Below, in pieces: positions 1 to 15,413 of a stretch of DNA of 64,000 bases (its first letter is position 1; every line of letters begins with the position of its first letter). The stretch covers positions 1 through 64,000 of IMG/VR virus record IMGVR_UViG_3300017528_000567; one strand, written 5' to 3'. Both the position numbers and the translations under genes were made by a program. Under the pieces are notes generated by a model. The model was given only the letters and a program-made list of their open reading frames with translations. It searched no databases and was not told where the DNA came from.

Positions 1-297
1 ATGGGAACGAAGTTGAAACTGGTTGCACAGAAGATCGACATCAGCACCGCGATCCACCAGATCTCGGAAATGACTGCACGTAACGACCACACGGCCGCCT
101 ATGTAGCCGGCGCCAAGGCTCTCGGGGCGAAGGAGCTCGCAAAGAAGCTCGACCTGGTGCGGCAGCTTGTAGACTTGGAGGGCTGTTTACCCTCAAAGCT
201 GTCCGACTACCGGCACGGGCTATACGAACAGCTCATGGCGTTCGCGAAGCAGGAGCTTAGCGCCAAGGATTTCGACCAGTTCTACCGCGCGTTTTGA
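1..297 (+). CDS. hypothetical phage protein (may be 5'-truncated at the window edge)
   Basis: 98-aa helical ORF starting at base 1; upstream context not visible. Confidence 0.6.
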   Translation: MGTKLKLVAQKIDISTAIHQISEMTARNDHTAAYVAGAKALGAKELAKKLDLVRQLVDLEGCLPSKLSDYRHGLYEQLMAFAKQELSAKDFDQFYRAF

Positions 298-337
298 CCA
301 ACCTGGGAGCATTGGGCGGCGTCTCCCCGCCCAATGT

Positions 338-1039
338 CTACACCGCACCGTGTAGACGCTTCATCTCGTCTTGCTTATCGCCAGATGTTGCCCAGCTCGG
401 GTTGCCAATCCTAGGCCCGTGCTGCCATCTGGCGTCCGTCGTTTTAACGAGCTTGGCTCCGTAGGCCTGACCCGCCCTTTCAATGACTTGCTTCATTTTT
501 GCCGACAAGCTCACCCCAATCTGATACCCGTACTTGCCGTTGGGCAATGCGGCAATCAGGACGTAGTAGGGCTTGGTCTCCGCATCCTGGACGTAGGTCT
601 CATCACTCTTCTGGGTGACGAAATCGCTACCCATCTGCGCGTTGATGATCTTCACGTACCGCAGCCACTCCTCCCCATGCCCATCGCTGCGGCGCAAATC
701 TTGAAGGTACCCGCGCACGTACGGCCCCGCTTCGGAGCCTCTCTCCAGCACAATGGCCTGCATGGCCTTGATGGCGTCTAGAAAGGCCGCGTGATGGGCC
801 ATCTCATGCGCCACTACCCGCTCGAGTGTGGCCAGGTTACCCGTCACAGTCTTCTGAACCTCTATCGTGCTGGTCGGCTGCCCGGGGGTCCACTTGCAGG
901 TGCCCAGGTTCCTCGCACCAATGGCATTCTTCACCTTCACGACTGGCGCGACGTCCAGGCCCAACATCGACATGTACTTCGCTACCAAGCCGTGCAGGTC
1001 GGCAGAGGCGATATGTATGTCGCGGTAGTCGTAGGTCAT
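338..1039 (-). CDS. SprT-like zinc metalloprotease
   Basis: HEMAH (HExxH) motif plus downstream GHGEEW; 'RNLGTC' strand before the active site as in SprT; start set at ATG 1039 (MTYDYR). Confidence 0.75.
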   Translation of the reverse strand: MTYDYRDIHIASADLHGLVAKYMSMLGLDVAPVVKVKNAIGARNLGTCKWTPGQPTSTIEVQKTVTGNLATLERVVAHEMAHHAAFLDAIKAMQAIVLERGSEAGPYVRGYLQDLRRSDGHGEEWLRYVKIINAQMGSDFVTQKSDETYVQDAETKPYYVLIAALPNGKYGYQIGVSLSAKMKQVIERAGQAYGAKLVKTTDARWQHGPRIGNPSWATSGDKQDEMKRLHGAV

Positions 1040-1085: not shown

Positions 1086-1523
1086 TTAGTTCAGCGGGCT
1101 CACGTGAGGGCGGCCCTGCACGGGCTTGAAGTCCTTTTCCAAGACGTCGGCAAGAAGGTCGGCCCCGTTGGCCTTATCGATGAATTTGGCGGCATACTTT
1201 CGCGCCTTTTCAAACGAATCAAACTGCTTCTTGCGCTGGTAGGTGCCGTCAGGGGTGTCGACCTCTACACCGAACTGATCACCGTCCTCGTAGATGCCCC
1301 ACGAGTGTTTGACCCCGCCAGCAAACTGAGCTCGCGCAAGCCAGACGCCGTCTTTGACTTCCTTCCAACCAATCGTCTCGCTAGGTGTGACCTTAGCGAG
1401 CCGAAGACTGAGATCTTCAAGAGCAGACGCAATGCGCCGCCGTGAGGGACGTTCACTCTGCGCGTAAGCAAGGAGGCGGCGCAGTTCGGATTGTAGTTCG
1501 GACGTGTTAGCGATCTTGCGCAT
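1086..1523 (-). CDS. MRKIAN-module protein 1 (tag plus unrelated C-terminal domain)
   Basis: Starts MRKIANTSELQSELRRLLAYAQSERPSR; same module at 8338 and 9294; AAAGG SD-like site upstream. Confidence 0.8.
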   Translation of the reverse strand: MRKIANTSELQSELRRLLAYAQSERPSRRRIASALEDLSLRLAKVTPSETIGWKEVKDGVWLARAQFAGGVKHSWGIYEDGDQFGVEVDTPDGTYQRKKQFDSFEKARKYAAKFIDKANGADLLADVLEKDFKPVQGRPHVSPLN

Positions 1524-1541
1524 GGGGTCGGTGCCTTTCAA

Positions 1542-1567
1542 GAGGCCCGGACTTGTGCGCCGTGCCC
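1542..1567 (-). promoter_or_regulatory. conserved 5'-leader hairpin of an MRKIAN gene
   Basis: GGGCACGGC-GCACAA-GTCCGGGCCTC. Confidence 0.7.
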
Positions 1568-1653
1568 TGTCACAGAGCTCGCCGCACAAGTGGTTTACTG
1601 CCTGCTTGCTCCCGTTAGGAACGTGGCAGAAATCTTTATACATCCGCTGCGAT

Positions 1654-2853
1654 ATGTTTGACCTTTTTGCGGCTCGTTCGACCCTGACCCTTGACGATGC
1701 CAAGCGAGTATTGGGTGTCCCGCCGGGCGGCTACATGTCTCCCGATGATCTCAAGGCGATCTACCGGCAGAAGGCGCAAGCGGCGCACCCTGACAAGGGC
1801 GGGACGATCAAGCAAATCCAAGATGTGAATGAGGCCTACGACATCTTGCGGGGCAAGGCCAAACCCGCGATGGCGCCGTCATATGATTACCGTCCCCCGC
1901 CGCCGCCCCCTCCCACGCCAAAGCGCGCCGGCCCGATCACCCCAGTCCAGCTAGGCGAGATCGTGGCGTACGCCCGGCACTTCGCCATGAATGCCTTGGA
2001 ATGGAGGAAGCTGGGCTTGCATCGGATTGTGCCGTTTGAGACCAACGCATCCGCCTTCTCTCATCTGACCGATGCCGAAGGATACGCAATATTGAGGATT
2101 CTCAGACAGTGGCGAGAGGATGCTCCAAACGAGCCACTGGCGACGCCAGCGCAAGTCGGCGAGATCCTGCGGCTCCTGCGTTCGTACGAGCAGTACATCA
2201 ATGTCAACCCATCCACATGGGACGACCTCGGGCTCTATCGGATCATCCCATATCCGAACCGCGGAGAAATGGATATCAGGCGCTGGACTGAGGACCAAGC
2301 TGAGAAGGTCCTGCGTATTTTGCGCCCCGCCGTCACATGGGCTGAGAAGTCAAAGCAGCATCAACAACCACCGCCGCCGCCGAAGGCGAAACAGCCACCG
2401 GCCACGAAGAAACAGATCGACCAGATCATACGTCTAAAGCTCACACACGACGAGTGGTATGCGTTCGGGTTGAATCGGATCTCACGCTTCCCAGGAGAGC
2501 TTGCGGACTACTACGATTTGACCGAGGACGACGCGAAAGAAATCCTCGCGATTGTGAAGCAGGCGCGTAAGCCAGCGACCAAGAAACGCGCGCCGCGATC
2601 GAGCCCCTCATCCGAACCCACCTCGCGTGCACGTGAACGCATGTATGAGGCCTACGACCGAGCCGACGGAGACCACGAATTCAAGTTCACAAAAATGCTC
2701 GTCGCGTTGCGTAAGCGCATCAAGGCGACCACGGACCCGGCGAAACGCGCCGGTATCGTCGACATGCTTCGAGAAGAGCTCAACAATCATCGCTGGAGCA
2801 TAGCGGACAAGGTCGTGTTCCGGCACATCCTAGACGTAGAGCTGAGGGCCTGA
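1654..2853 (+). CDS. DnaJ (J-domain) protein with three ~60-aa internal repeats
   Basis: AKRVLGV...YRQKAQAAHPDKGG...VNEAYDIL is a J-domain with the HPD motif; repeats begin ITPVQLGEI / ATPAQVGEI / ATKKQIDQI. Confidence 0.85.
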   Translation: MFDLFAARSTLTLDDAKRVLGVPPGGYMSPDDLKAIYRQKAQAAHPDKGGTIKQIQDVNEAYDILRGKAKPAMAPSYDYRPPPPPPPTPKRAGPITPVQLGEIVAYARHFAMNALEWRKLGLHRIVPFETNASAFSHLTDAEGYAILRILRQWREDAPNEPLATPAQVGEILRLLRSYEQYINVNPSTWDDLGLYRIIPYPNRGEMDIRRWTEDQAEKVLRILRPAVTWAEKSKQHQQPPPPPKAKQPPATKKQIDQIIRLKLTHDEWYAFGLNRISRFPGELADYYDLTEDDAKEILAIVKQARKPATKKRAPRSSPSSEPTSRARERMYEAYDRADGDHEFKFTKMLVALRKRIKATTDPAKRAGIVDMLREELNNHRWSIADKVVFRHILDVELRA

Positions 2854-2926
2854 TGGACGCTCAAGGGCACATCGCCGCACGAGTCCTATGGCGATTCTCT
2901 GCGGCTTCGTGAAGACGGCCCGTGTG

Positions 2927-2961
2927 CTTGAAGTTTAGCCCCTGTCGATTGTCTTGAGGGC
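2927..2961 (+). promoter_or_regulatory. class-I promoter-like motif
   Basis: CTTGAAG-N13-GATTGT-N9-ATG. Confidence 0.8.
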
Positions 2962-3429
2962 ATGACCCAACAAATCACAACCAAGTCAGACGTTGCCCCG
3001 GCCCCGCGCACGGCGTATGCCACACCCGCTGAGAACATTGGCAAAGCCATTGACCTCCTGAACTACCTGCCAAACGGAGTGGCGGCGTGGGTCGAGGCAC
3101 ACGACGGCAATCAAGAGTTGGCTGAAGCAAACGGGGAGCAAATCAAGCAGCTCGTGAACCAACTGGGGGCGATTCTGGCCTCTATGCCAAGATCAGCGGT
3201 CTACAACGTGTACGGAGTAGGCGACAAAACCTTGACCTTCTCGAGCTCGGCAGAGTTGATCGCGGCAATGGCCGGCATGGGAATCAAACATGTTGGCTAC
3301 TCATCTAGGACATCACGCCTTCGCCCCGAGCTGAAAGGGCAACCCACATTCACGTCGCTCAACGGCCCCATGTACGACGGCGGAGGCAAGATCAGATATG
3401 AAGGCCGCGGTGTGGGCACCATGTACTAG
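2962..3429 (+). CDS. hypothetical protein (C-terminal GQP...GPM...RYE motif)
   Basis: 155-aa ORF directly after a class-I promoter motif. Confidence 0.75.
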   Translation: MTQQITTKSDVAPAPRTAYATPAENIGKAIDLLNYLPNGVAAWVEAHDGNQELAEANGEQIKQLVNQLGAILASMPRSAVYNVYGVGDKTLTFSSSAELIAAMAGMGIKHVGYSSRTSRLRPELKGQPTFTSLNGPMYDGGGKIRYEGRGVGTMY

Positions 3430-3430
3430 G

Positions 3431-4252
3431 TCACAGTCGCAACGCCTTCAGCGCGGTGAACTTGTCCGGAGCCTTGGCCTTAAGATGGCCGGGCTCCAGT
3501 GCATAGCTCGCGAAGGACTCTGCGAAGTCTTCAATGTTTGGCTTGCTCTCCGCATAGTCAGAGATGAAAGGCGGCTGACCCCACGGCGGCGCGTTGAGGT
3601 CGACGTGGTGCCGCTCCTCAACACCATGCCCCAGCTCGTGAGTGATGTAGGTCGCCAAGACGTCGATACTAGGCACGTGCCCCTCTCGGAGCACTAGGCG
3701 CATTGTGCCTTGACCATCCCAAGAGGCGTCCTCTGAACCGCGGGCCTTGTTCGCCAGCAGTATCTTGCTCACGACGCCCATGGCGCGTTTTGCGGGCGCC
3801 TTGAGCTTTTTGAAGGCTCGGCTCCACAGCGCTATTAGCTCTGGTGCGTCCTTGCGGTGTTCGAGCGAGCCCTCGTAGGTGACGTTCTTCCCGGTGATTT
3901 TCTCGAGCTCGCGGCGGGCGTCGTAGAACGAGGCCTCCGGCTTGCTCTTCGGGGCTCGCGGCATTGCCACGTCTTTCAGCTCGGCGACCTGTGGCGGTTC
4001 GAGGCCCGACCAGCCCTCGAACCATTGGAACAGCTCGCCAACGGTCTTCGGGACGTCATACACGTCATTCGCCGCAATCTGTTTCAACCAGCTTTGCGTA
4101 CGGCGAATCGTCGACGTCCAGCCCCCGCGCCACTCGGACGTTTCGGAGGTGTTCTCCGCCTCCATGAACGCGATGAGCTTTTGCAGATAGGGGGCAGTGA
4201 CGGGCGCCGATTCGACAAACCGCGCCAGCACGGCGTGAGCAACGGAGTACAT
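3431..4252 (-). CDS. zinc-dependent metallopeptidase (HExxH, anthrax-LF/MuF-associated type)
   Basis: THELGH plus downstream SDYA...EDFAESF; N-terminal AVLARFVESA motif; start uncertain. Confidence 0.7.
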   Translation of the reverse strand: MYSVAHAVLARFVESAPVTAPYLQKLIAFMEAENTSETSEWRGGWTSTIRRTQSWLKQIAANDVYDVPKTVGELFQWFEGWSGLEPPQVAELKDVAMPRAPKSKPEASFYDARRELEKITGKNVTYEGSLEHRKDAPELIALWSRAFKKLKAPAKRAMGVVSKILLANKARGSEDASWDGQGTMRLVLREGHVPSIDVLATYITHELGHGVEERHHVDLNAPPWGQPPFISDYAESKPNIEDFAESFASYALEPGHLKAKAPDKFTALKALRL

Positions 4253-4293
4253 GTAGAGGGAGCTTGAAAAGACCTCTACCGACCCCGTTGGCA

Positions 4294-4608
4294 TCATGCT
4301 CCTAGTCGCTCCCTGACCTGCTGCAGAACGCCGGTCTCCTCCCGCATCCACCGATCGAGGCGGCTGGTCTCAAAGCTGTCCACCGGCTCAGCTAAATAGG
4401 TGGTGGCCGGTCTAAACACAAAGGATAGACCTTCGGGAGAGGTGAGCTCCTCGGGCGCTTCGTAGGGGTCGTCACTCCCTACCCCGCGTAACTTCCAACC
4501 AAGCGCGCGTGCAACACTGACCCATGCAGACATGGAGGCAGGAGTTGCCTTGAGCACCTCTTTAAATATACCGACACCCGGAGACTGATTTTTGCGCTTC
4601 TTGGTCAT
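4294..4608 (-). CDS. hypothetical protein
   Basis: 104-aa ORF MTKKRKNQ...; GAGGGA upstream. Confidence 0.6.
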   Translation of the reverse strand: MTKKRKNQSPGVGIFKEVLKATPASMSAWVSVARALGWKLRGVGSDDPYEAPEELTSPEGLSFVFRPATTYLAEPVDSFETSRLDRWMREETGVLQQVRERLGA

Positions 4609-4636
4609 ACCGTGTCCCTCAATGTACGCTGCAATG

Positions 4637-4852
4637 CTAGTCAACGAGAGATTCGCCAACCTCAAGAATGTCGTAGCCGGTGGACTCGATTGCGGCACTC
4701 ATTGCGGCATCTACCGCCGCATCCTCCGAGCTCGCCAGTGCGACGCACCGAAACCTGGAGGGAAGATCCACCGCATGGATGGGACCGGCCTGGTCGCAGG
4801 TGGAGTCGCCCCAAGTGATATTGCGGAGAGTGACGGTATAACGCCGCGGCAT
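4637..4852 (-). CDS. hypothetical protein
   Basis: 71-aa ORF MPRRYTVTLRNITW; ATG sits 9 nt after a class-I promoter motif. Confidence 0.7.
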   Translation of the reverse strand: MPRRYTVTLRNITWGDSTCDQAGPIHAVDLPSRFRCVALASSEDAAVDAAMSAAIESTGYDILEVGESLVD

Positions 4853-4887
4853 GTCCTGAAGACAATCGACACGGGGCAAACTTCAAG
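4853..4887 (-). promoter_or_regulatory. class-I promoter-like motif
   Basis: CTTGAAG-N13-GATTGT-N9-ATG. Confidence 0.8.
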
Positions 4888-5029
4888 GGCACCAGCTGGT
4901 CGTCGAGCTGGCGGAATGGACCCAGCTTACGGGCTCGTCGCAAACCGTTTATGACACATCATGTGAAACGGGTTACGATGTGTGCACGAACGGCACTCCA
5001 ACAATCCTGTGGTAGAAATAGACAGACCC

Positions 5030-5725
5030 ATGACCTACGACTTTCGACGTGAGGCGTCGGACGCCAAGAAGGCACTCAAGGATCTCTACCTGTGGCTCCG
5101 CGGCAAGTACGATCAAGGGTATGGCAACCGTATGAGCCCTCAGCTTGAGGCCGGCCTGCGTGCGTTGGGTGTCGAGCCTGGTGATGAGCTGCCACGGCGT
5201 CCGTCCGGCGCGGTGCCACGTGCTCTGTACGATCTGGTAGTGATGGCTGGAGAGCACCACGTGTATGAGTCCGATCGCGAAGTGCTTCTTGAAGCTGCCA
5301 ACAAGGCGCTCGGCGGCAACGGCCACGAGCTACCGGGGGAAGCAGCGCCAAAGTCCTCATTCACTCGCAACAGCAAGTGTCCGAAATGCGGCAATCCCGG
5401 TCCTCACGAGGACAACGGGAAGAAGGGCCGCGATCAGGTGTTCTACTGCGACGAATGTGGCAAGGCGTTCGGCGGCACCATGATGAACCTGTCAGCTGCC
5501 GGTCGACCGGTCGCGACTTCCGATGGGGAGATCATGTTGGACCTGTACGATTTGACTGGTGACCATGAGCCGGTGTCGCTCGCTCAGTTCATTGCAGACA
5601 ACAGTGCCCCAGATGTGGCACCGCTGGACCTCCAAGACATTGCTGCGTTGCGTCGGCTCCGCGTCGGACAGCACGTTTACCTCGGGATTGGCGGCGGTGG
5701 CGTCAAGATCAAGCGCATCGGGTGA
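5030..5725 (+). CDS. hypothetical protein with zinc ribbon
   Basis: CPKCG...FYCDECGK; starts MTYDFR, similar to the 1039 gene. Confidence 0.7.
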   Translation: MTYDFRREASDAKKALKDLYLWLRGKYDQGYGNRMSPQLEAGLRALGVEPGDELPRRPSGAVPRALYDLVVMAGEHHVYESDREVLLEAANKALGGNGHELPGEAAPKSSFTRNSKCPKCGNPGPHEDNGKKGRDQVFYCDECGKAFGGTMMNLSAAGRPVATSDGEIMLDLYDLTGDHEPVSLAQFIADNSAPDVAPLDLQDIAALRRLRVGQHVYLGIGGGGVKIKRIG

Positions 5726-5866
5726 CCTGATTTCCCAGAAAGCTCGCAGAGGCTGGTCGGGATGGACTGCCTCGTGAATGACGCACTTGGTGTAGCCGTA
5801 GGCATGAGCCTCGCCTACACCAGACCTTGACATTCTTCCTGTCTTGGAAGTATCGAGAGTTATACA

Positions 5867-6079
5867 ATGTACAATTCTCGAGCTAGTACGACCAAGCCGC
5901 TCCTTATCGAGGAAAACGTCCCGCCGAGACGCAAGCCAATCGACTGGGAGGTCTTGACTGCGGATGAGCTCGGCGACCTCGCGCGTCACGGCAAGGATAG
6001 TTCGACCAAGAACACCGCCCTCATGCATCTAGTCAAGCGAGCGAGCATCGTCGATCCGCACGTCCGCAAAACGGCCTAG
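5867..6079 (+). CDS. hypothetical protein
   Basis: 70-aa ORF; TTGACA at 5827 upstream. Confidence 0.45.
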   Translation: MYNSRASTTKPLLIEENVPPRRKPIDWEVLTADELGDLARHGKDSSTKNTALMHLVKRASIVDPHVRKTA

Positions 6080-6104
6080 AGCATGCGCGGAGCTCAGTGC
6101 TTGC

Positions 6105-6139
6105 CTTGAAGTTCGACCGTTGTCGATTGTCTCTCACGG
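6105..6139 (+). promoter_or_regulatory. class-I promoter-like motif
   Basis: CTTGAAG-N13-GATTGT-N9-GTG. Confidence 0.8.
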
Positions 6140-6586
6140 GTGAGCAAGAGCTTGAAGAATCTCAGGGGGCTTCTGCCAGGTGGCTATGTTCGGGGAGAGA
6201 GGCTTAGCCTGGACCGTCTTGGCGACGCCCTGGCCGACGCAATCAACAGGATTGATCGGAGAGCCCGCTGTGTGGCTGAAGACGCCGGCCTGCCGGACCC
6301 CGCGCCGCGCTTCGGGCAAATCCTAGCCGACCTGCATGCGCTCTTGACTGGCGGTACGACCGGGGCGCGCAAGGCGGAAGTAGCAGCCGATCTCCTACAT
6401 GGAGAAGTTACGGGGACCACCCTAACCATCGGCAGCGTCACGCATGACATTGACTGGGTCGTGATGCGTGAAGTGACTGACCCGACAATCATCGTCGAGG
6501 ACGGCACGGTCATCTACCTGCGGAGCTGGGCCGACCACAGGGCCGCGCTGCTCAAGCTCGGCGCTGACCACGTCCCCGGGAGATAG
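6140..6586 (+). CDS. hypothetical protein
   Basis: 148-aa ORF; GTG start 9 nt after a class-I promoter motif. Confidence 0.7.
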   Translation: MSKSLKNLRGLLPGGYVRGERLSLDRLGDALADAINRIDRRARCVAEDAGLPDPAPRFGQILADLHALLTGGTTGARKAEVAADLLHGEVTGTTLTIGSVTHDIDWVVMREVTDPTIIVEDGTVIYLRSWADHRAALLKLGADHVPGR

Positions 6587-6595
6587 TCACCGGCT

Positions 6596-6619
6596 GGTGC
6601 CCGGATAGGCAGGGACTGG
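6596..6619 (+). repeat. half copy of the AATGGA-loop palindrome
   Basis: GGTGC-CCGGATAGGCAGGGACTGG; 3' arm missing. Confidence 0.6.
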
Positions 6620-6679
6620 CGGCTCGTTCGCGAGCGCTGCCTAGCCTAGAATCCTGGAGAAGTCCTACCTGAGAGCAGG

Positions 6680-7072
6680 CTAGGTGCTCAACGTTTTGTA
6701 GATGGTTGACCAGAAATCTGCGACATCGTTGTCGTCGAGGTGGTGCTGGAGCTTGCCTGTGGGCGCAGTGTCCATGATGCGCTCAGACGTTCTACGCGAT
6801 TTGGGAATGCGTGACGCCACCACGGCAATGATCCGCGCCACCACTACAGGTGCACCCGGCACCTGCTCTCCCGCTCCGCGGCAAGCCTTCCGAAACTTCC
6901 GCAACTTCTGCGCGAAGCTCTTCTCATGAAGTTGGGTCTCCAGCGTGAGCCCATTCTTGTGAGCCAGGCGCTGTAGGCAGAACATGCTAAACGCATTTGC
7001 GAGGCTGGACTCTAGTTCGTTTTCCAGCGCGTTCTGTGCTTCTGGCAGTGGCTTCGCAAGTGCAACCCTCAT
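6680..7072 (-). CDS. hypothetical protein, paralogous to the upstream ORF (LDDxDxAxFW motif)
   Basis: In frame with 7076..7510 across one TAG; C-terminus KLQHHLDDNDVADFWS. Confidence 0.6.
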   Translation of the reverse strand: MRVALAKPLPEAQNALENELESSLANAFSMFCLQRLAHKNGLTLETQLHEKSFAQKLRKFRKACRGAGEQVPGAPVVVARIIAVVASRIPKSRRTSERIMDTAPTGKLQHHLDDNDVADFWSTIYKTLST

Positions 7073-7075
7073 GAC

Positions 7076-7510
7076 CTACGGGATAGCACGTTCAGCGGCC
7101 ATGGTCTCATCGACGCGCGTCCAGAAACCTGCGGTGTCTTGGTCGTCCAACGTCACACGTAACTTGTTGATATCCGGGACCTTTTTAATGAACTCGCTGA
7201 CTGCCTTGCGACGAATTCGCTCATCCGCGCTCTTCACATCGGCAATTGTCTCCTGGACGGCCTTACCTCGATCGCTGAATCCTTGGATGGCGTGCTCCAT
7301 CGCGTTAGAGAACGCTGTCAACAGTTTTTTGACCTCGGTGTCCCATGCCGGAACCGAAGCCATGTACCCAGTCTTCCGACCTAGGCAAGCCTTGTAATAC
7401 TCCCGTAGTCCGCCTTTCAGGTGCTTGGCCAGGCCCGCTTTGTAAAGCACCCGATTGTGCGCCATCGCGAATAGGAATCGCCTCGTGATGCGCGTCGCCA
7501 AATCGTCCAT
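7076..7510 (-). CDS. hypothetical protein (N-terminal RITRRFL motif)
   Basis: 144-aa ORF; C-terminus KLRVTLDDQDTAGFWT. Confidence 0.7.
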   Translation of the reverse strand: MDDLATRITRRFLFAMAHNRVLYKAGLAKHLKGGLREYYKACLGRKTGYMASVPAWDTEVKKLLTAFSNAMEHAIQGFSDRGKAVQETIADVKSADERIRRKAVSEFIKKVPDINKLRVTLDDQDTAGFWTRVDETMAAERAIP

Positions 7511-7555
7511 GTATTGCTCGCCGCCAATTCTCGTGTCGGTGCTAGTCTCTCACTG

Positions 7556-7654
7556 TCAGCCTCGCAGCAGGGCACTGGTGCCTTGTGCCGCTGTTCCAAG
7601 TGTTCTGAGCTGCAGCTCGAGCTCCAGTTCACTCGTATTGGCGATCTTGCGCAT
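7556..7654 (-). pseudogene. truncated MRKIAN-module ORF (32 aa)
   Basis: MRKIANTSELELELQL then diverges and stops; keeps the full conserved upstream element. Confidence 0.6.
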
Positions 7655-7675
7655 GGGTCTGGGCGATCCTTTCGA

Positions 7676-7701
7676 GAGGCTCGGACTTGTGCGCCGTGCC
7701 C
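7676..7701 (-). promoter_or_regulatory. conserved 5'-leader hairpin of an MRKIAN gene
   Basis: GGGCACGGC-GCACAA-GTCCGAGCCTC. Confidence 0.7.
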
Positions 7702-7768
7702 TTGTTACAGAGCTCGAACCACAAGTGCTTTACTGCGCAGAAACAACGACGCTAGCGTTGCCCCCAGC

Positions 7769-7775
7769 GGTGTAA
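7769..7775 (+). promoter_or_regulatory. class-II motif GGTGTAA
   Basis: 8 nt before ATG 7784. Confidence 0.7.
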
Positions 7776-7783
7776 CAACCCAC

Positions 7784-8260
7784 ATGGATGACATTCGGCC
7801 GCTCGGGTCCGTAGAAGTTAGATGCGCTTACCCAGGATGCAACTGGAGCTTCTGGGTAGATTGCCTGGACCCAAGGCTGCCCGTCGGGCCGTTTGATTGC
7901 GGGGCCGACCACCAAACGCAAGCGCGAGTCAACGCTGCCCTAGAGAAGCTAGACAATGCCGGCCTGGTCTATCAAACAGCCGCGGGACCTGGCTGTGGTT
8001 GCGGAGGGCCGACCCAAAAATCCGGGTGCGAGCCGCCTCCCGCGCAACCCCCTACGATGACGACCGGGTATCTGATGCTACGGCTGCGCGAACCGGACTT
8101 TGATGGGAGTCAAGAGATGTGGGCCGCGGGTCGATTTGCGTGGGCGACTTGGGCCTCTCTCGGCGATCTTGAGGCGCTTCCGTGCGACGCCGGGGCCTAT
8201 CATTGGATGCCCCTTGATGAGGCGAGTCGTAACCGCCCAGCGGGTTACACAGGCCCTTGA
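7784..8260 (+). CDS. Cys-rich hypothetical protein
   Basis: ATG 8 nt after GGTGTAA; CAYPGC, DC, CGCGG motifs. Confidence 0.7.
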   Translation: MDDIRPLGSVEVRCAYPGCNWSFWVDCLDPRLPVGPFDCGADHQTQARVNAALEKLDNAGLVYQTAAGPGCGCGGPTQKSGCEPPPAQPPTMTTGYLMLRLREPDFDGSQEMWAAGRFAWATWASLGDLEALPCDAGAYHWMPLDEASRNRPAGYTGP

Positions 8261-8293
8261 GCCAAGAAAGCTCTTATCTGCTGCGCTCTGTGA

Positions 8294-8316
8294 AGGCACG
8301 GCTGAGGTCCGGCCTC
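8294..8316 (+). promoter_or_regulatory. conserved 5'-leader hairpin of an MRKIAN gene
   Basis: AGGCACGGC-TGAG-GTCCGGCCTC. Confidence 0.7.
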
Positions 8317-8337
8317 AACCCAAGGGAGCCTTGACCG

Positions 8338-8883
8338 ATGCGTAAGATCGCCAACACCCACGAGCTACAGGACGAGCTGCGGAAGCTCATCGCTTACACA
8401 GGGAGCAATAGGCCCTCTAGAGAACGCATTGCTCTAGAACTGAAGACCCTTTCAACTCGGCTCGCTTCTAGTGGAGGCCCGCTCCTGGACGCCAAGGTCG
8501 AGTGGGCGGTGGAGCTCGGTGAGCTCATGAAAGCACGATTCAGCGGCGTCGGCGGCTGGCGAGACCACCACATCAACATCGACATGCACCGCACAAACTC
8601 TGGATGCACTGTCAATCTAGAGAGCCCCCTTGGATGGACTAGCAACATCTATATCGAGATGGGCGAAGGCGAGCAGGCAGTCCATGTCTATTTCAATGTG
8701 TCAGAGCCCAAGGATACGCCCACGGGTGCAGACGGATTGCCCGACCTCGACGCCATTGACCTGACCGACCTGATCGGGAAACAGAAACGCGAAAGCTTCC
8801 CTATCAAGGACCGCGAGCCTATGGCCAAGGCGATGATGGCCGTGTCACTGTGGATCTCGAAGCAGATTCAAAGCGGCCGTTGA
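8338..8883 (+). CDS. MRKIAN-module protein 2
   Basis: MRKIANTHELQDELRKLIAYTGSNRPSRERIALELKTLSTRLA. Confidence 0.85.
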   Translation: MRKIANTHELQDELRKLIAYTGSNRPSRERIALELKTLSTRLASSGGPLLDAKVEWAVELGELMKARFSGVGGWRDHHINIDMHRTNSGCTVNLESPLGWTSNIYIEMGEGEQAVHVYFNVSEPKDTPTGADGLPDLDAIDLTDLIGKQKRESFPIKDREPMAKAMMAVSLWISKQIQSGR

Positions 8884-8905
8884 CGTCGCTCTGCAGCGCG
8901 ACGCT

Positions 8906-8940
8906 AACCGGATAGGCAGGGAATGGACCCTGCTTATCCG
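8906..8940 (+). repeat. AATGGA-loop palindrome, copy 2
   Basis: AACCGGATAGGCAGGG-AATGGA-CCCTGCTTATCCG. Confidence 0.9.
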
Positions 8941-8946
8941 TCTGTA

Positions 8947-9294
8947 TCAGTTGCCTGTGTCTGCTGTGATCAACCAGATCAATTTTCCGAAGACATCGTC
9001 CAGTTCGGTGACAACAGTTGCGAATTTCCGCACGGCAATTTTTGTGTCAGCGCTGAGTCCGCGACTCCCCATCAGTCCGCGGGCGACCTTCTTCACTTGT
9101 TCTATTGGCCCTTCAATACTGGCGACCAAGCGTCCCTCGTCAGTCAGCTCAGCCGTATGCTCGCCGGCAACGCGGGCACGGAGAGACTCGAGCTCGCTGG
9201 CGAGCCGAGAACGGGATGGTTTATCGGTCTGAGCATAGGCAAGCAGGCGGCGCAGCTCGATCTCAAGTTCATCGGCATCGGCAATCTTACGCAT
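8947..9294 (-). CDS. MRKIAN-module protein 3
   Basis: MRKIADADELEIELRRLLAYAQTDKPSRSRLASELESLRARVA. Confidence 0.8.
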   Translation of the reverse strand: MRKIADADELEIELRRLLAYAQTDKPSRSRLASELESLRARVAGEHTAELTDEGRLVASIEGPIEQVKKVARGLMGSRGLSADTKIAVRKFATVVTELDDVFGKLIWLITADTGN

Positions 9295-9317
9295 TGGTCT
9301 GGCACCTTTCTAGAGTG

Positions 9318-9342
9318 GAGGCCGGACCTCAACGCCGTGCCT
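9318..9342 (-). promoter_or_regulatory. conserved 5'-leader hairpin of an MRKIAN gene
   Basis: AGGCACGGC-GTTGAG-GTCCGGCCTC. Confidence 0.7.
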
Positions 9343-9394
9343 TCAAAAGGCGCGCTCGATAAGTGGTTGCTCGACGGCCTGCCTATCCAAGATG

Positions 9395-9577
9395 TCATCG
9401 CTTGCGCTTCTTCGCTTGCGGCGTAGGCGCAAGCGACTCCATCCGTTCGGCACGCTCCACCAAAGCCTCTGCCACTGCGTCAGGTGGTAACCCGGTCAAT
9501 TCACCGAGCATCGCGAAATATGCCCCGTCAGGGAGGTCGTCGTCGACAATGAGTAGGGCCGTCGCGATGTCCATCAT
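9395..9577 (-). CDS. small hypothetical protein (DDDLPDGAYFAM)
   Basis: 60 aa; ATG 9 nt after GGTGTAG. Confidence 0.7.
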   Translation of the reverse strand: MMDIATALLIVDDDLPDGAYFAMLGELTGLPPDAVAEALVERAERMESLAPTPQAKKRKR

Positions 9578-9586
9578 GGGAAGGCT

Positions 9587-9593
9587 CTACACC
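9587..9593 (-). promoter_or_regulatory. class-II motif GGTGTAG
   Basis: 9 nt before ATG 9577. Confidence 0.7.
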
Positions 9594-9772
9594 GACACGC
9601 AGCCAGGCGTAAAGCCCAGGGGCTCAAGGTCAGCTGCCGATTCGCCACGTGGGCGCGACGCGGCTCATTCGCCGCGGGTTTTGGCCTCCTTTGCGAACGG
9701 CTTGAAGTTTCGCTCTGGCCAAGACGTATTTGCAGGAACCGCCTGATATCAGGAACGAGAGGGTCAGACGTC

Positions 9773-11386: not shown

Positions 11387-11448
11387 TAACCGGATAGGCA
11401 TGGAATGGACCTTGCCTATCCGGTTAGCACCCCCTGAAAGTCTGGAAA
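11387..11448 (+). repeat. AATGGA-loop palindrome, copy 3, plus left inverted-repeat arm
   Basis: TAACCGGATAGGCATGG-AATGGA-CCTTGCCTATCCGGTTA-GCACCCCCTGAAAGTCTGGAAA. Confidence 0.9.
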
Positions 11449-13212: not shown

Positions 13213-13247
13213 CTTGAAGTTTGGCCCCCGCCGATTGTCTTTACGGT
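13213..13247 (+). promoter_or_regulatory. class-I promoter-like motif
   Basis: CTTGAAG-N13-GATTGT-N9-ATG. Confidence 0.8.
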
Positions 13248-15355: not shown

Positions 15356-15413
15356 ATACTTTCAGGGGGTGCAAACCGGATAGGCATGGAATGGACCATG
15401 CCTATCACGCCGG
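15351..15413 (+). repeat. right inverted-repeat arm plus AATGGA-loop palindrome, copy 4
   Basis: TTTCCATACTTTCAGGGGGTGC-A-AACCGGATAGGCATGG-AATGGA-CCATGCCTATC. Confidence 0.9.

Follow-up and report, generated by a model that had tools for sequence, protein, structure and literature searches.

The first 64,000 nucleotides (nt), hereafter the window, of the 255,478-bp IMG/VR virus record IMGVR_UViG_3300017528_000567 (GC content 59%, CheckV completeness 54%) contain genes whose products share a 44-residue N-terminal tag opening with MRKIA(N/D), and upstream of their start codons stands a short hairpin with a conserved stem, which is described here. The pattern of conservation in this phage and its relatives indicates that the hairpin is a selected cis-element, with both arms under strong purifying selection. 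It is a lineage-specific insert placed 12–21 nt after a 13-nt box, the box being the feature common to the leaders of the whole tag family, and a single-stranded hairpin, RNA likeliest, accounts for the data better than a site in double-stranded DNA would. That the element is a leader stem-loop recognized by a protein, through which the mRNAs of the tag genes are co-regulated, is the reading we favor, with about an even chance of being correct. Relatives carrying the same gene family are records of 229–529 kb from soil and sediment, and the analyzed record is therefore a fragment of an uncultured megaphage; to our knowledge, nothing is known of the gene expression signals of 230–530-kb soil phages.

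A bipartite search pattern, consisting of the left arm GGCACGGC, 3–8 nt, and the right arm GTCCG, an optional N and GCCTC, matched four times in the 64 kb and never in 100 dinucleotide shuffles, confirming the observation of an earlier note, made from the sequence letters, that the motif precedes each of four MRKIAN starts. The ATG after every match opens MRKIA(N/D), and all four copies (designated 1 to 4, with starts at 1523, 7654, 8338 and 9294) have a purine-rich Shine-Dalgarno-like block and GACC(N) ahead of it, matching the AAGG ribosome-binding-like site and GACC(N) reported earlier. Searching the whole record with tblastn revealed a fifth tag gene at 209,076(-), whose leader carries the same arms with 10 nt between them. 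A sixth, degenerate copy belongs to a tag gene of the same phage that starts 110 nt left of window position 1; it was found at L164:832-880, on a metagenome contig that overlaps window positions 1–768 at 98.8%, and the gene is divergent from the open reading frame (ORF) 1–297. Every hairpin copy in the 255-kb record is upstream of a tag start. Between the arms, only two types of loop occur in the window, an identical 6-mer in copies 1 and 2 and related 4- and 6-mers in copies 3 and 4, and true loop variability becomes apparent only with the copies outside the window and in relatives; the proposal that the loop varies while the stem is kept thus holds for this larger set and not for the window itself. 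The closing C/G pair with a bulged T that was also proposed is dispensable and cannot form in L186 and L189, which have 2 nt between the arms.

Comparison of the copies with their surroundings shows that the arms have been maintained by selection. Where the five full tag paralogues have identical residues, their third codon positions agree at a rate of 0.39, compared with the 0.27 expected from composition, so that synonymous sites are nearly saturated and the paralogues are old; nevertheless, 15–16 arm nucleotides are identical in the five copies, with loops and flanks randomized. The copy at 209 kb and its orthologue L161 differ in loop length (10 versus 5 nt, counted between 8-nt arms) and in the bulge (A to G), but agree at all 27 nt between right arm and ATG. 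Contigs from four independent soil sequencing runs carry 54 substitutions over positions 7000–9600 (2.6 kb) and none in the three hairpins of that region, with substitutions right beside the hairpins at 8331, 8337, 9316 and 9346; zero against 1.5 expected is, taken alone, not significant. The earlier suggestion of a cis-regulatory site acting as RNA or DNA is supported to this extent, that the motif is a selected cis-element whose arms stayed identical while synonymous sites approached saturation.

To define the structure, 19 hairpin leaders were compared; this phage supplied six, and the protein family led to the other 13, on eleven further contigs. Each leader was described by its distance to the ATG and by the lengths of its parts, and pairs were counted by script from these numeric coordinates; MAFFT alignments misplace the 3′ bulge and were not used for the counts. 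All 19 leaders share one architecture, in which a 5′ bulge of 1–2 nt separates an outer stem of 4 bp from an inner stem of 3 bp, the loop measures 5–13 nt, and the 3′ bulge has 0–2 nt. The 5′ bulge reads G, A, C, AG or CT, with a lone purine in nearly all cases, and the 3′ bulge, where present, is G, A or GA. Watson-Crick or G.U pairs fill 124 of the 133 pair cells; when the 3′ partners were shuffled within columns 2000 times, the count averaged 113.5 and never exceeded 120. Variation is concentrated at unpaired positions. Within the stem, the outermost pair varies between G.U, A-U and G-C, five leaders have G.U at the second pair, in L197 one inner pair is flipped from G-C to C-G, and L195 has four pairs changed on both sides with the same architecture and position; read on the sense strand, the cells include 8 G.U versus 2 A.C. 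Pair-breaking changes were found in L164 (two), L158 (one), L186b and L196. In the anchored alignment, RNAalifold predicts the hairpin as the sole consensus helix, at -19.6 kcal/mol. The covariance model R1 recovered no copies other than near-identical ones and gave no match in six related megaphage records, its alignment being too noisy for pair counts, and a broad DNA pattern scan of viral contigs returned chance matches only.

The hairpin does not accompany the tag family as a whole. When 58 leaders were aligned with a small expectation-maximization script, a 13-nt box, roughly AAWSCWYTTRTSG in IUPAC code, appeared ahead of 56 of the 58 tag genes examined; the 45 nt upstream of the box show no conservation, with an information content close to zero. 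By the distance separating box and ATG, the leaders form three classes, 12–16 nt (with no obvious ribosome site), 20–41 nt and 54–67 nt, and the hairpin is present only in the last. Every hairpin leader carries the box, and the box alone precedes hairpin-less tag genes, about 35 of them from six related megaphage records and several metagenome contigs; tag genes directly after another gene (L189:1501, L197:1518) have neither box nor hairpin. The earlier claim that the hairpin travels with the tag is contradicted by these two groups of genes. The box also occurs up to 13 nt before some non-tag starts, for example near 121,874, 142,727, 148,953 and 206,989, and the total number of position weight matrix (PWM) matches in this genome is not above a Markov control. 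We read the box as most likely marking the promoter of one transcript class, which would probably be read with no -35 element. No RNA polymerase or sigma factor of the phage's own was found in the record, which is uninformative given that the record is itself 54% of the genome.

Relative to these landmarks, the hairpin is held at a nearly fixed distance after the box (15.2 ± 2.0 nt, range 12–21 nt) and more loosely before the ATG (21.2 ± 3.5 nt, range 14–28 nt), with as many as about 10 nt between its end and the purine block. Because the spacing to the box is the tighter one, and because operon-internal tag genes lack the hairpin, it appears to belong to the 5′ end of the transcription unit and not to the ribosome site. 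A single-stranded sense hairpin is favored because the spacing of the arms varies, the bulge is always in the 5′ arm, the orientation is fixed, and G.U cells outnumber A.C cells. Recognition by a protein is favored in turn because selection keeps the stem sequence and the bulged purine, and not merely stability.

These features can be combined into a provisional mechanism. The box would mark the promoter, and in this lineage the 20–29-nt element 12–21 nt after it would be transcribed and would fold in the 5′ leader RNA into the outer stem, 5′ bulge and inner stem described above, around a loop free in length and sequence, with the ribosome site and the start codon following at a looser distance. 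A sequence-specific RNA-binding protein, from the phage or its host, would dock on the hairpin and thereby co-regulate the lifetime or the translation of a small set of mRNAs. Transcription of the element, its action as RNA, protein binding and the direction of the effect are inferred. An extension of this idea, in which the hairpin is the operator of a dedicated post-transcriptional regulon and one RNA-binding protein times the production of the tagged small proteins, with their hundreds of different cargo domains, in uncultured soil megaphages, seems to us unlikely.

Several results weigh against a protein-bound RNA hairpin. None of the sequencing runs listed as containing this DNA is an RNA run, no candidate binding protein was identified, and Rfam 15 yielded no match at gathering thresholds in the 64 kb; at E values up to 5, the region 1400–9500 gave only two chance matches, away from the leaders. 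Covariation is thin, with most paired positions invariant and the double changes coming from two sequences, the G.U wobbles probably stem from 3–4 events, and the anchored alignment was fitted to the hairpin. L164 and L158 break pairs without compensation, both changes in L164, the sixth copy of this phage, falling in the left arm opposite an intact right arm. In single-sequence folding of the short leaders, z-scores are near 0 and the hairpin is not favored; its mean pair probability is about 0.25 in the leader context with any assumed 5′ end, and shuffled GC-rich leaders often yield such hairpins (mean -7.2 versus -9.2 kcal/mol observed). Because single-sequence folding does not pick out the hairpin, the structural case rests on the comparative evidence, which is of moderate strength.

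Among known systems, the closest parallels to a protein-bound leader are the phage operator hairpins, namely the coat-protein sites of MS2, PP7 and Q-beta and the sites of T4 gene 32, gene 43 and RegA, with which the element shares a short leader hairpin whose stem is conserved in sequence, carries a bulged purine and is always oriented alike upstream of the regulated start; with one site serving several mRNAs, the arrangement would resemble a RegA-like regulon. Classical operators, however, overlap the start codon or the ribosome site, and the sequence of their loop is defined, whereas here the hairpin ends 14–28 nt before the ATG, no overlap with the Shine-Dalgarno site or the start codon of the kind seen at coat-protein and RegA sites was found, and the loop is free. 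Lambda nut sites (boxA plus boxB) and the antitermination leaders of rrn operons likewise combine, close to the transcript's 5′ end, a linear box with a short hairpin after it, and a boxA-like heptamer, GCTCTTA, is present in two of the six box copies only (the one at 8267 and the one at 209 kb). In lambda nut, boxA lies about 8 nt upstream of the hairpin, compared with 12–21 nt here, and boxB is a 5-bp stem with a conserved GNRA-like pentaloop, unlike the bulge-interrupted stem and free 5–13-nt loop of the tag-gene leaders. The box consensus of the family is also not that of boxA, many relatives have the box 12–16 nt before the ATG without a hairpin, and ahead of the box there is no additional conserved motif that could serve as promoter. 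The boxA/nut reading was kept as a resemblance only, the consensus, the position before the start and the lack of any other upstream signal standing against it.

A DNA-level element, either an operator over the transcription start or a supercoil-extruded hairpin promoter like those of the phage N4 virion RNA polymerase, is a doubtful alternative. It would account for stems kept in sequence rather than by covariation, for two arms that form an imperfect dyad, and for a fixed place after the only conserved upstream box, which is a typical operator position; transcription starting just after the hairpin would leave an ordinary 15–25-nt leader with its ribosome site. Yet a rigid dimer on B-DNA could not tolerate arm spacings of 5–13 nt, and the constant orientation toward the gene and the excess of G.U over A.C on the sense strand also argue for a single strand, as does a box that is already present in every hairpin leader and stands alone before hairpin-less tag genes. 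N4 early promoters do share a small GC-rich inverted repeat just upstream of an ordinary leader. Their hairpins, however, have a 5–7-bp stem and a 3-nt loop with base-specific contacts, with the start about 11 nt downstream, and N4-type promoters need this 3-nt loop with conserved bases; the loops of 5–13 nt, the wobble pairs and the box already upstream do not match that design. A reading of the arms as a sigma-54 or extracytoplasmic function (ECF)-type promoter was rejected, the spacings not fitting.

Somewhat less probable again is a generic 5′-proximal stabilizer or conformational switch that works without a protein of its own. Like ompA-type 5′ stabilizers, the hairpin sits close to the presumed 5′ end and is linked to the transcription unit and not to the coding sequence, but such stabilizers are sequence-independent and would need stability and not a fixed stem sequence, whereas here stem sequence and bulge are conserved. 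As a switch, the left arm could alternate between the nucleotides after the box and the right arm, with temperature or co-transcriptional folding as the cue. The 10–19 nt between box and hairpin do pair with the left arm better than shuffles (mean z -1.0, with z < -1.1 in 11 of 19 leaders), but these z-scores derive from mononucleotide shuffles and may reflect GCGC-rich composition. In copies 1 (1558–1596(-), 9 nt) and 2 (7692–7731(-), 7 nt), the loop and the upstream box are exact reverse complements, and in copy 1 this complementarity gives a long alternative hairpin with a z-score of -3.7; it matters only if the box is transcribed, and it represents one evolutionary event. Neither a second consensus helix in RNAalifold nor conserved pairing between right arm and ribosome site (mean z -0.14, no better than shuffles) was detected, and the latter value led us to reject an anti-Shine-Dalgarno role for the right arm as well. 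A Rho-independent terminator or attenuator was rejected for want of a U tract after the hairpin.

That the leaders have no function of their own and are flanking DNA copied along with the genes, the case the earlier note had named as fatal to its proposal, is very improbable, since only copies 1 and 2 represent a recent duplication that includes the leader, and the selection pattern among the older paralogues contradicts it, as does the finding that other phages have the same architecture in a changed sequence. An N-terminal coding extension through the hairpin was rejected because the differences in loop length are not multiples of three and an in-frame stop lies upstream in copy 3, and an integron attC-like site was set aside, its size and position being wrong and the gene orientation mixed.

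The duplicated leader merits separate description. Copies 1 and 2 are 84.6% identical over 104 nt spanning -78 to +21, which bears out the similarity over about 80 nt noted earlier, and the likeness ends after codon 7. Copy 2 does not, as had been assumed, precede a fourth tag gene; what follows is a 32-codon stub before the gene 7076–7510(-). It is a recent duplicate of box, leader and seven codons, and a natural instance of promoter and leader capture. The idea of a cassette grafted onto new genes therefore holds once, at 7654, where box, leader and seven codons stand before an unrelated gene, and fails for the other paralogues, which are old and have saturated synonymous sites. The 7654 stub is also kept in the sister strain G001.

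The tag that the hairpin leaders precede defines a large family. A profile built from 13 tags matched 652 cluster representatives at E <= 0.001 and 361 at <= 1e-10, and among the best 150 matches listed nearly all cover residues 1–44, in proteins of 45–354 residues with unrelated C-terminal parts; one related record has 13 tag genes. All members of the family that were found come from metagenome contigs or from records of megaphage size. The tag has no match in Pfam or PHROG (the sole PHROG match is to the cargo part of the 209-kb gene), no copy in 185,579 species genomes and no counterpart in the ESM Atlas. AlphaFold2, run with a 40-sequence alignment, predicts two helices at residues 7–21 and 28–49, joined by an invariant Pro-Ser-Arg, with a mean predicted local distance difference test (pLDDT) score of 88. 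A copy of the full-length protein of gene 8338 is encoded on a 434-kb contig, and a word-based protein search gave two matches. Genes neighboring the hairpin leaders have no Pfam or PHROG match in this record, which covers 54% of the genome.

One possibility is that the 44-residue module is a sorting or assembly signal. If the tag does direct sorting, for example into the virion for injection (compare the T4 capsid-targeting sequence), the leader would be a first handle on how an injected or sorted arsenal is scheduled. The hairpin is a new element of an ordinary kind, limited to one lineage of the megaphage clade. Practical handles nevertheless follow from it and from the box, which stands before nearly all genes of a very large tagged family, often 12–16 nt before the start codon. 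The hairpin would mark a co-regulated subset, copy 2 offers a natural case of box plus leader copied before an unrelated gene, and box and hairpin together can be tested in reporters and can seed a covariance model for annotating megaphage metagenomes.

Genes and sequences next to the tag genes show a few recurrent features. A DnaJ-domain protein with three internal repeats, at 1654–2853(+) in the window, adjoins tag gene 1, and a DnaJ-like gene (L189:2242-3231) also lies downstream of tag genes in contig WUUC01121968; the cargo of one tag protein of G003 (L136) looks J-domain-like by eye. Directly upstream of several tag genes there is tRNA-like sequence, in the stretches before L170 and L175, and a T-loop motif lies upstream of the 209-kb copy (L005, about 4180–4280). 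The features located in the window are listed in Table 1.

Table 1. Positions of leader elements, tag genes and other repeated signals in the 64-kb window.
Feature	Position	Strand	Remarks
Pattern match 1	1542-1566	(-)	Ends 18 nt before ATG
Pattern match 2	7676-7700	(-)	Ends 21 nt before ATG
Pattern match 3	8295-8316	(+)	Ends 21 nt before ATG
Pattern match 4	9318-9341	(-)	Ends 23 nt before ATG
Leader stem-loop, copy 1	1543-1567	(-)	Outer 4 bp, bulged A, inner 3 bp, 9-nt loop
Leader stem-loop, copy 2	7677-7701	(-)	
Leader stem-loop, copy 3	8294-8315	(+)	7-nt loop, no 3′ bulge
Leader stem-loop, copy 4	9319-9342	(-)	
Upstream box, copy 1	1584-1596	(-)	PWM 9.6; candidate promoter element
Upstream box, copy 2	7719-7731	(-)	PWM 9.8
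Upstream box, copy 3	8267-8279	(+)	PWM 10.1
Upstream box, copy 4	9357-9369	(-)	PWM 9.3
Shine-Dalgarno-like block, copy 1	1534-1539	(-)	
Shine-Dalgarno-like block, copy 3	8322-8328	(+)	
Shine-Dalgarno-like block, copy 4	9305-9310	(-)	
Tag gene 1	1086-1523	(-)	145 aa; 44-aa N-terminal tag plus unrelated cargo
Stub ORF, 32 codons	7556-7654	(-)	Tag-derived in first 7 codons only; gene 7076-7510 starts 46 nt downstream
Tag gene 3	8338-8883	(+)	181 aa
Tag gene 4	8947-9294	(-)	115 aa
Second upstream signal	2928-2954	(+)	
Second upstream signal	4860-4886	(-)	
Second upstream signal	6106-6132	(+)	
Second upstream signal	13214-13240	(+)	
Palindrome repeat	6601-6614		
Palindrome repeat	8908-8941		
Palindrome repeat	11390-11423		
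Palindrome repeat	15376-15389		

Two further repeated signals were noticed nearby. The first is an 8-nt block joined through a 7-nt spacer to a block of 12 nt; its four occurrences in the 255-kb record all fall within the first 14 kb, and it ends 7–8 nt before the start codons at 2962, 4852 and 6140. It is a candidate for a second class of promoter, whose mRNAs would have little or no leader. The second is a repeated 13–14-nt palindrome arm that forms a long hairpin right after stop codons (6 matches versus 0.6 expected), for example between the convergent genes 8338–8883 and 8947–9294. Contigs of the four soil runs end or branch at 8906–8940, and the repeat looks like a terminator or a repetitive extragenic palindrome (REP)-type repeat.

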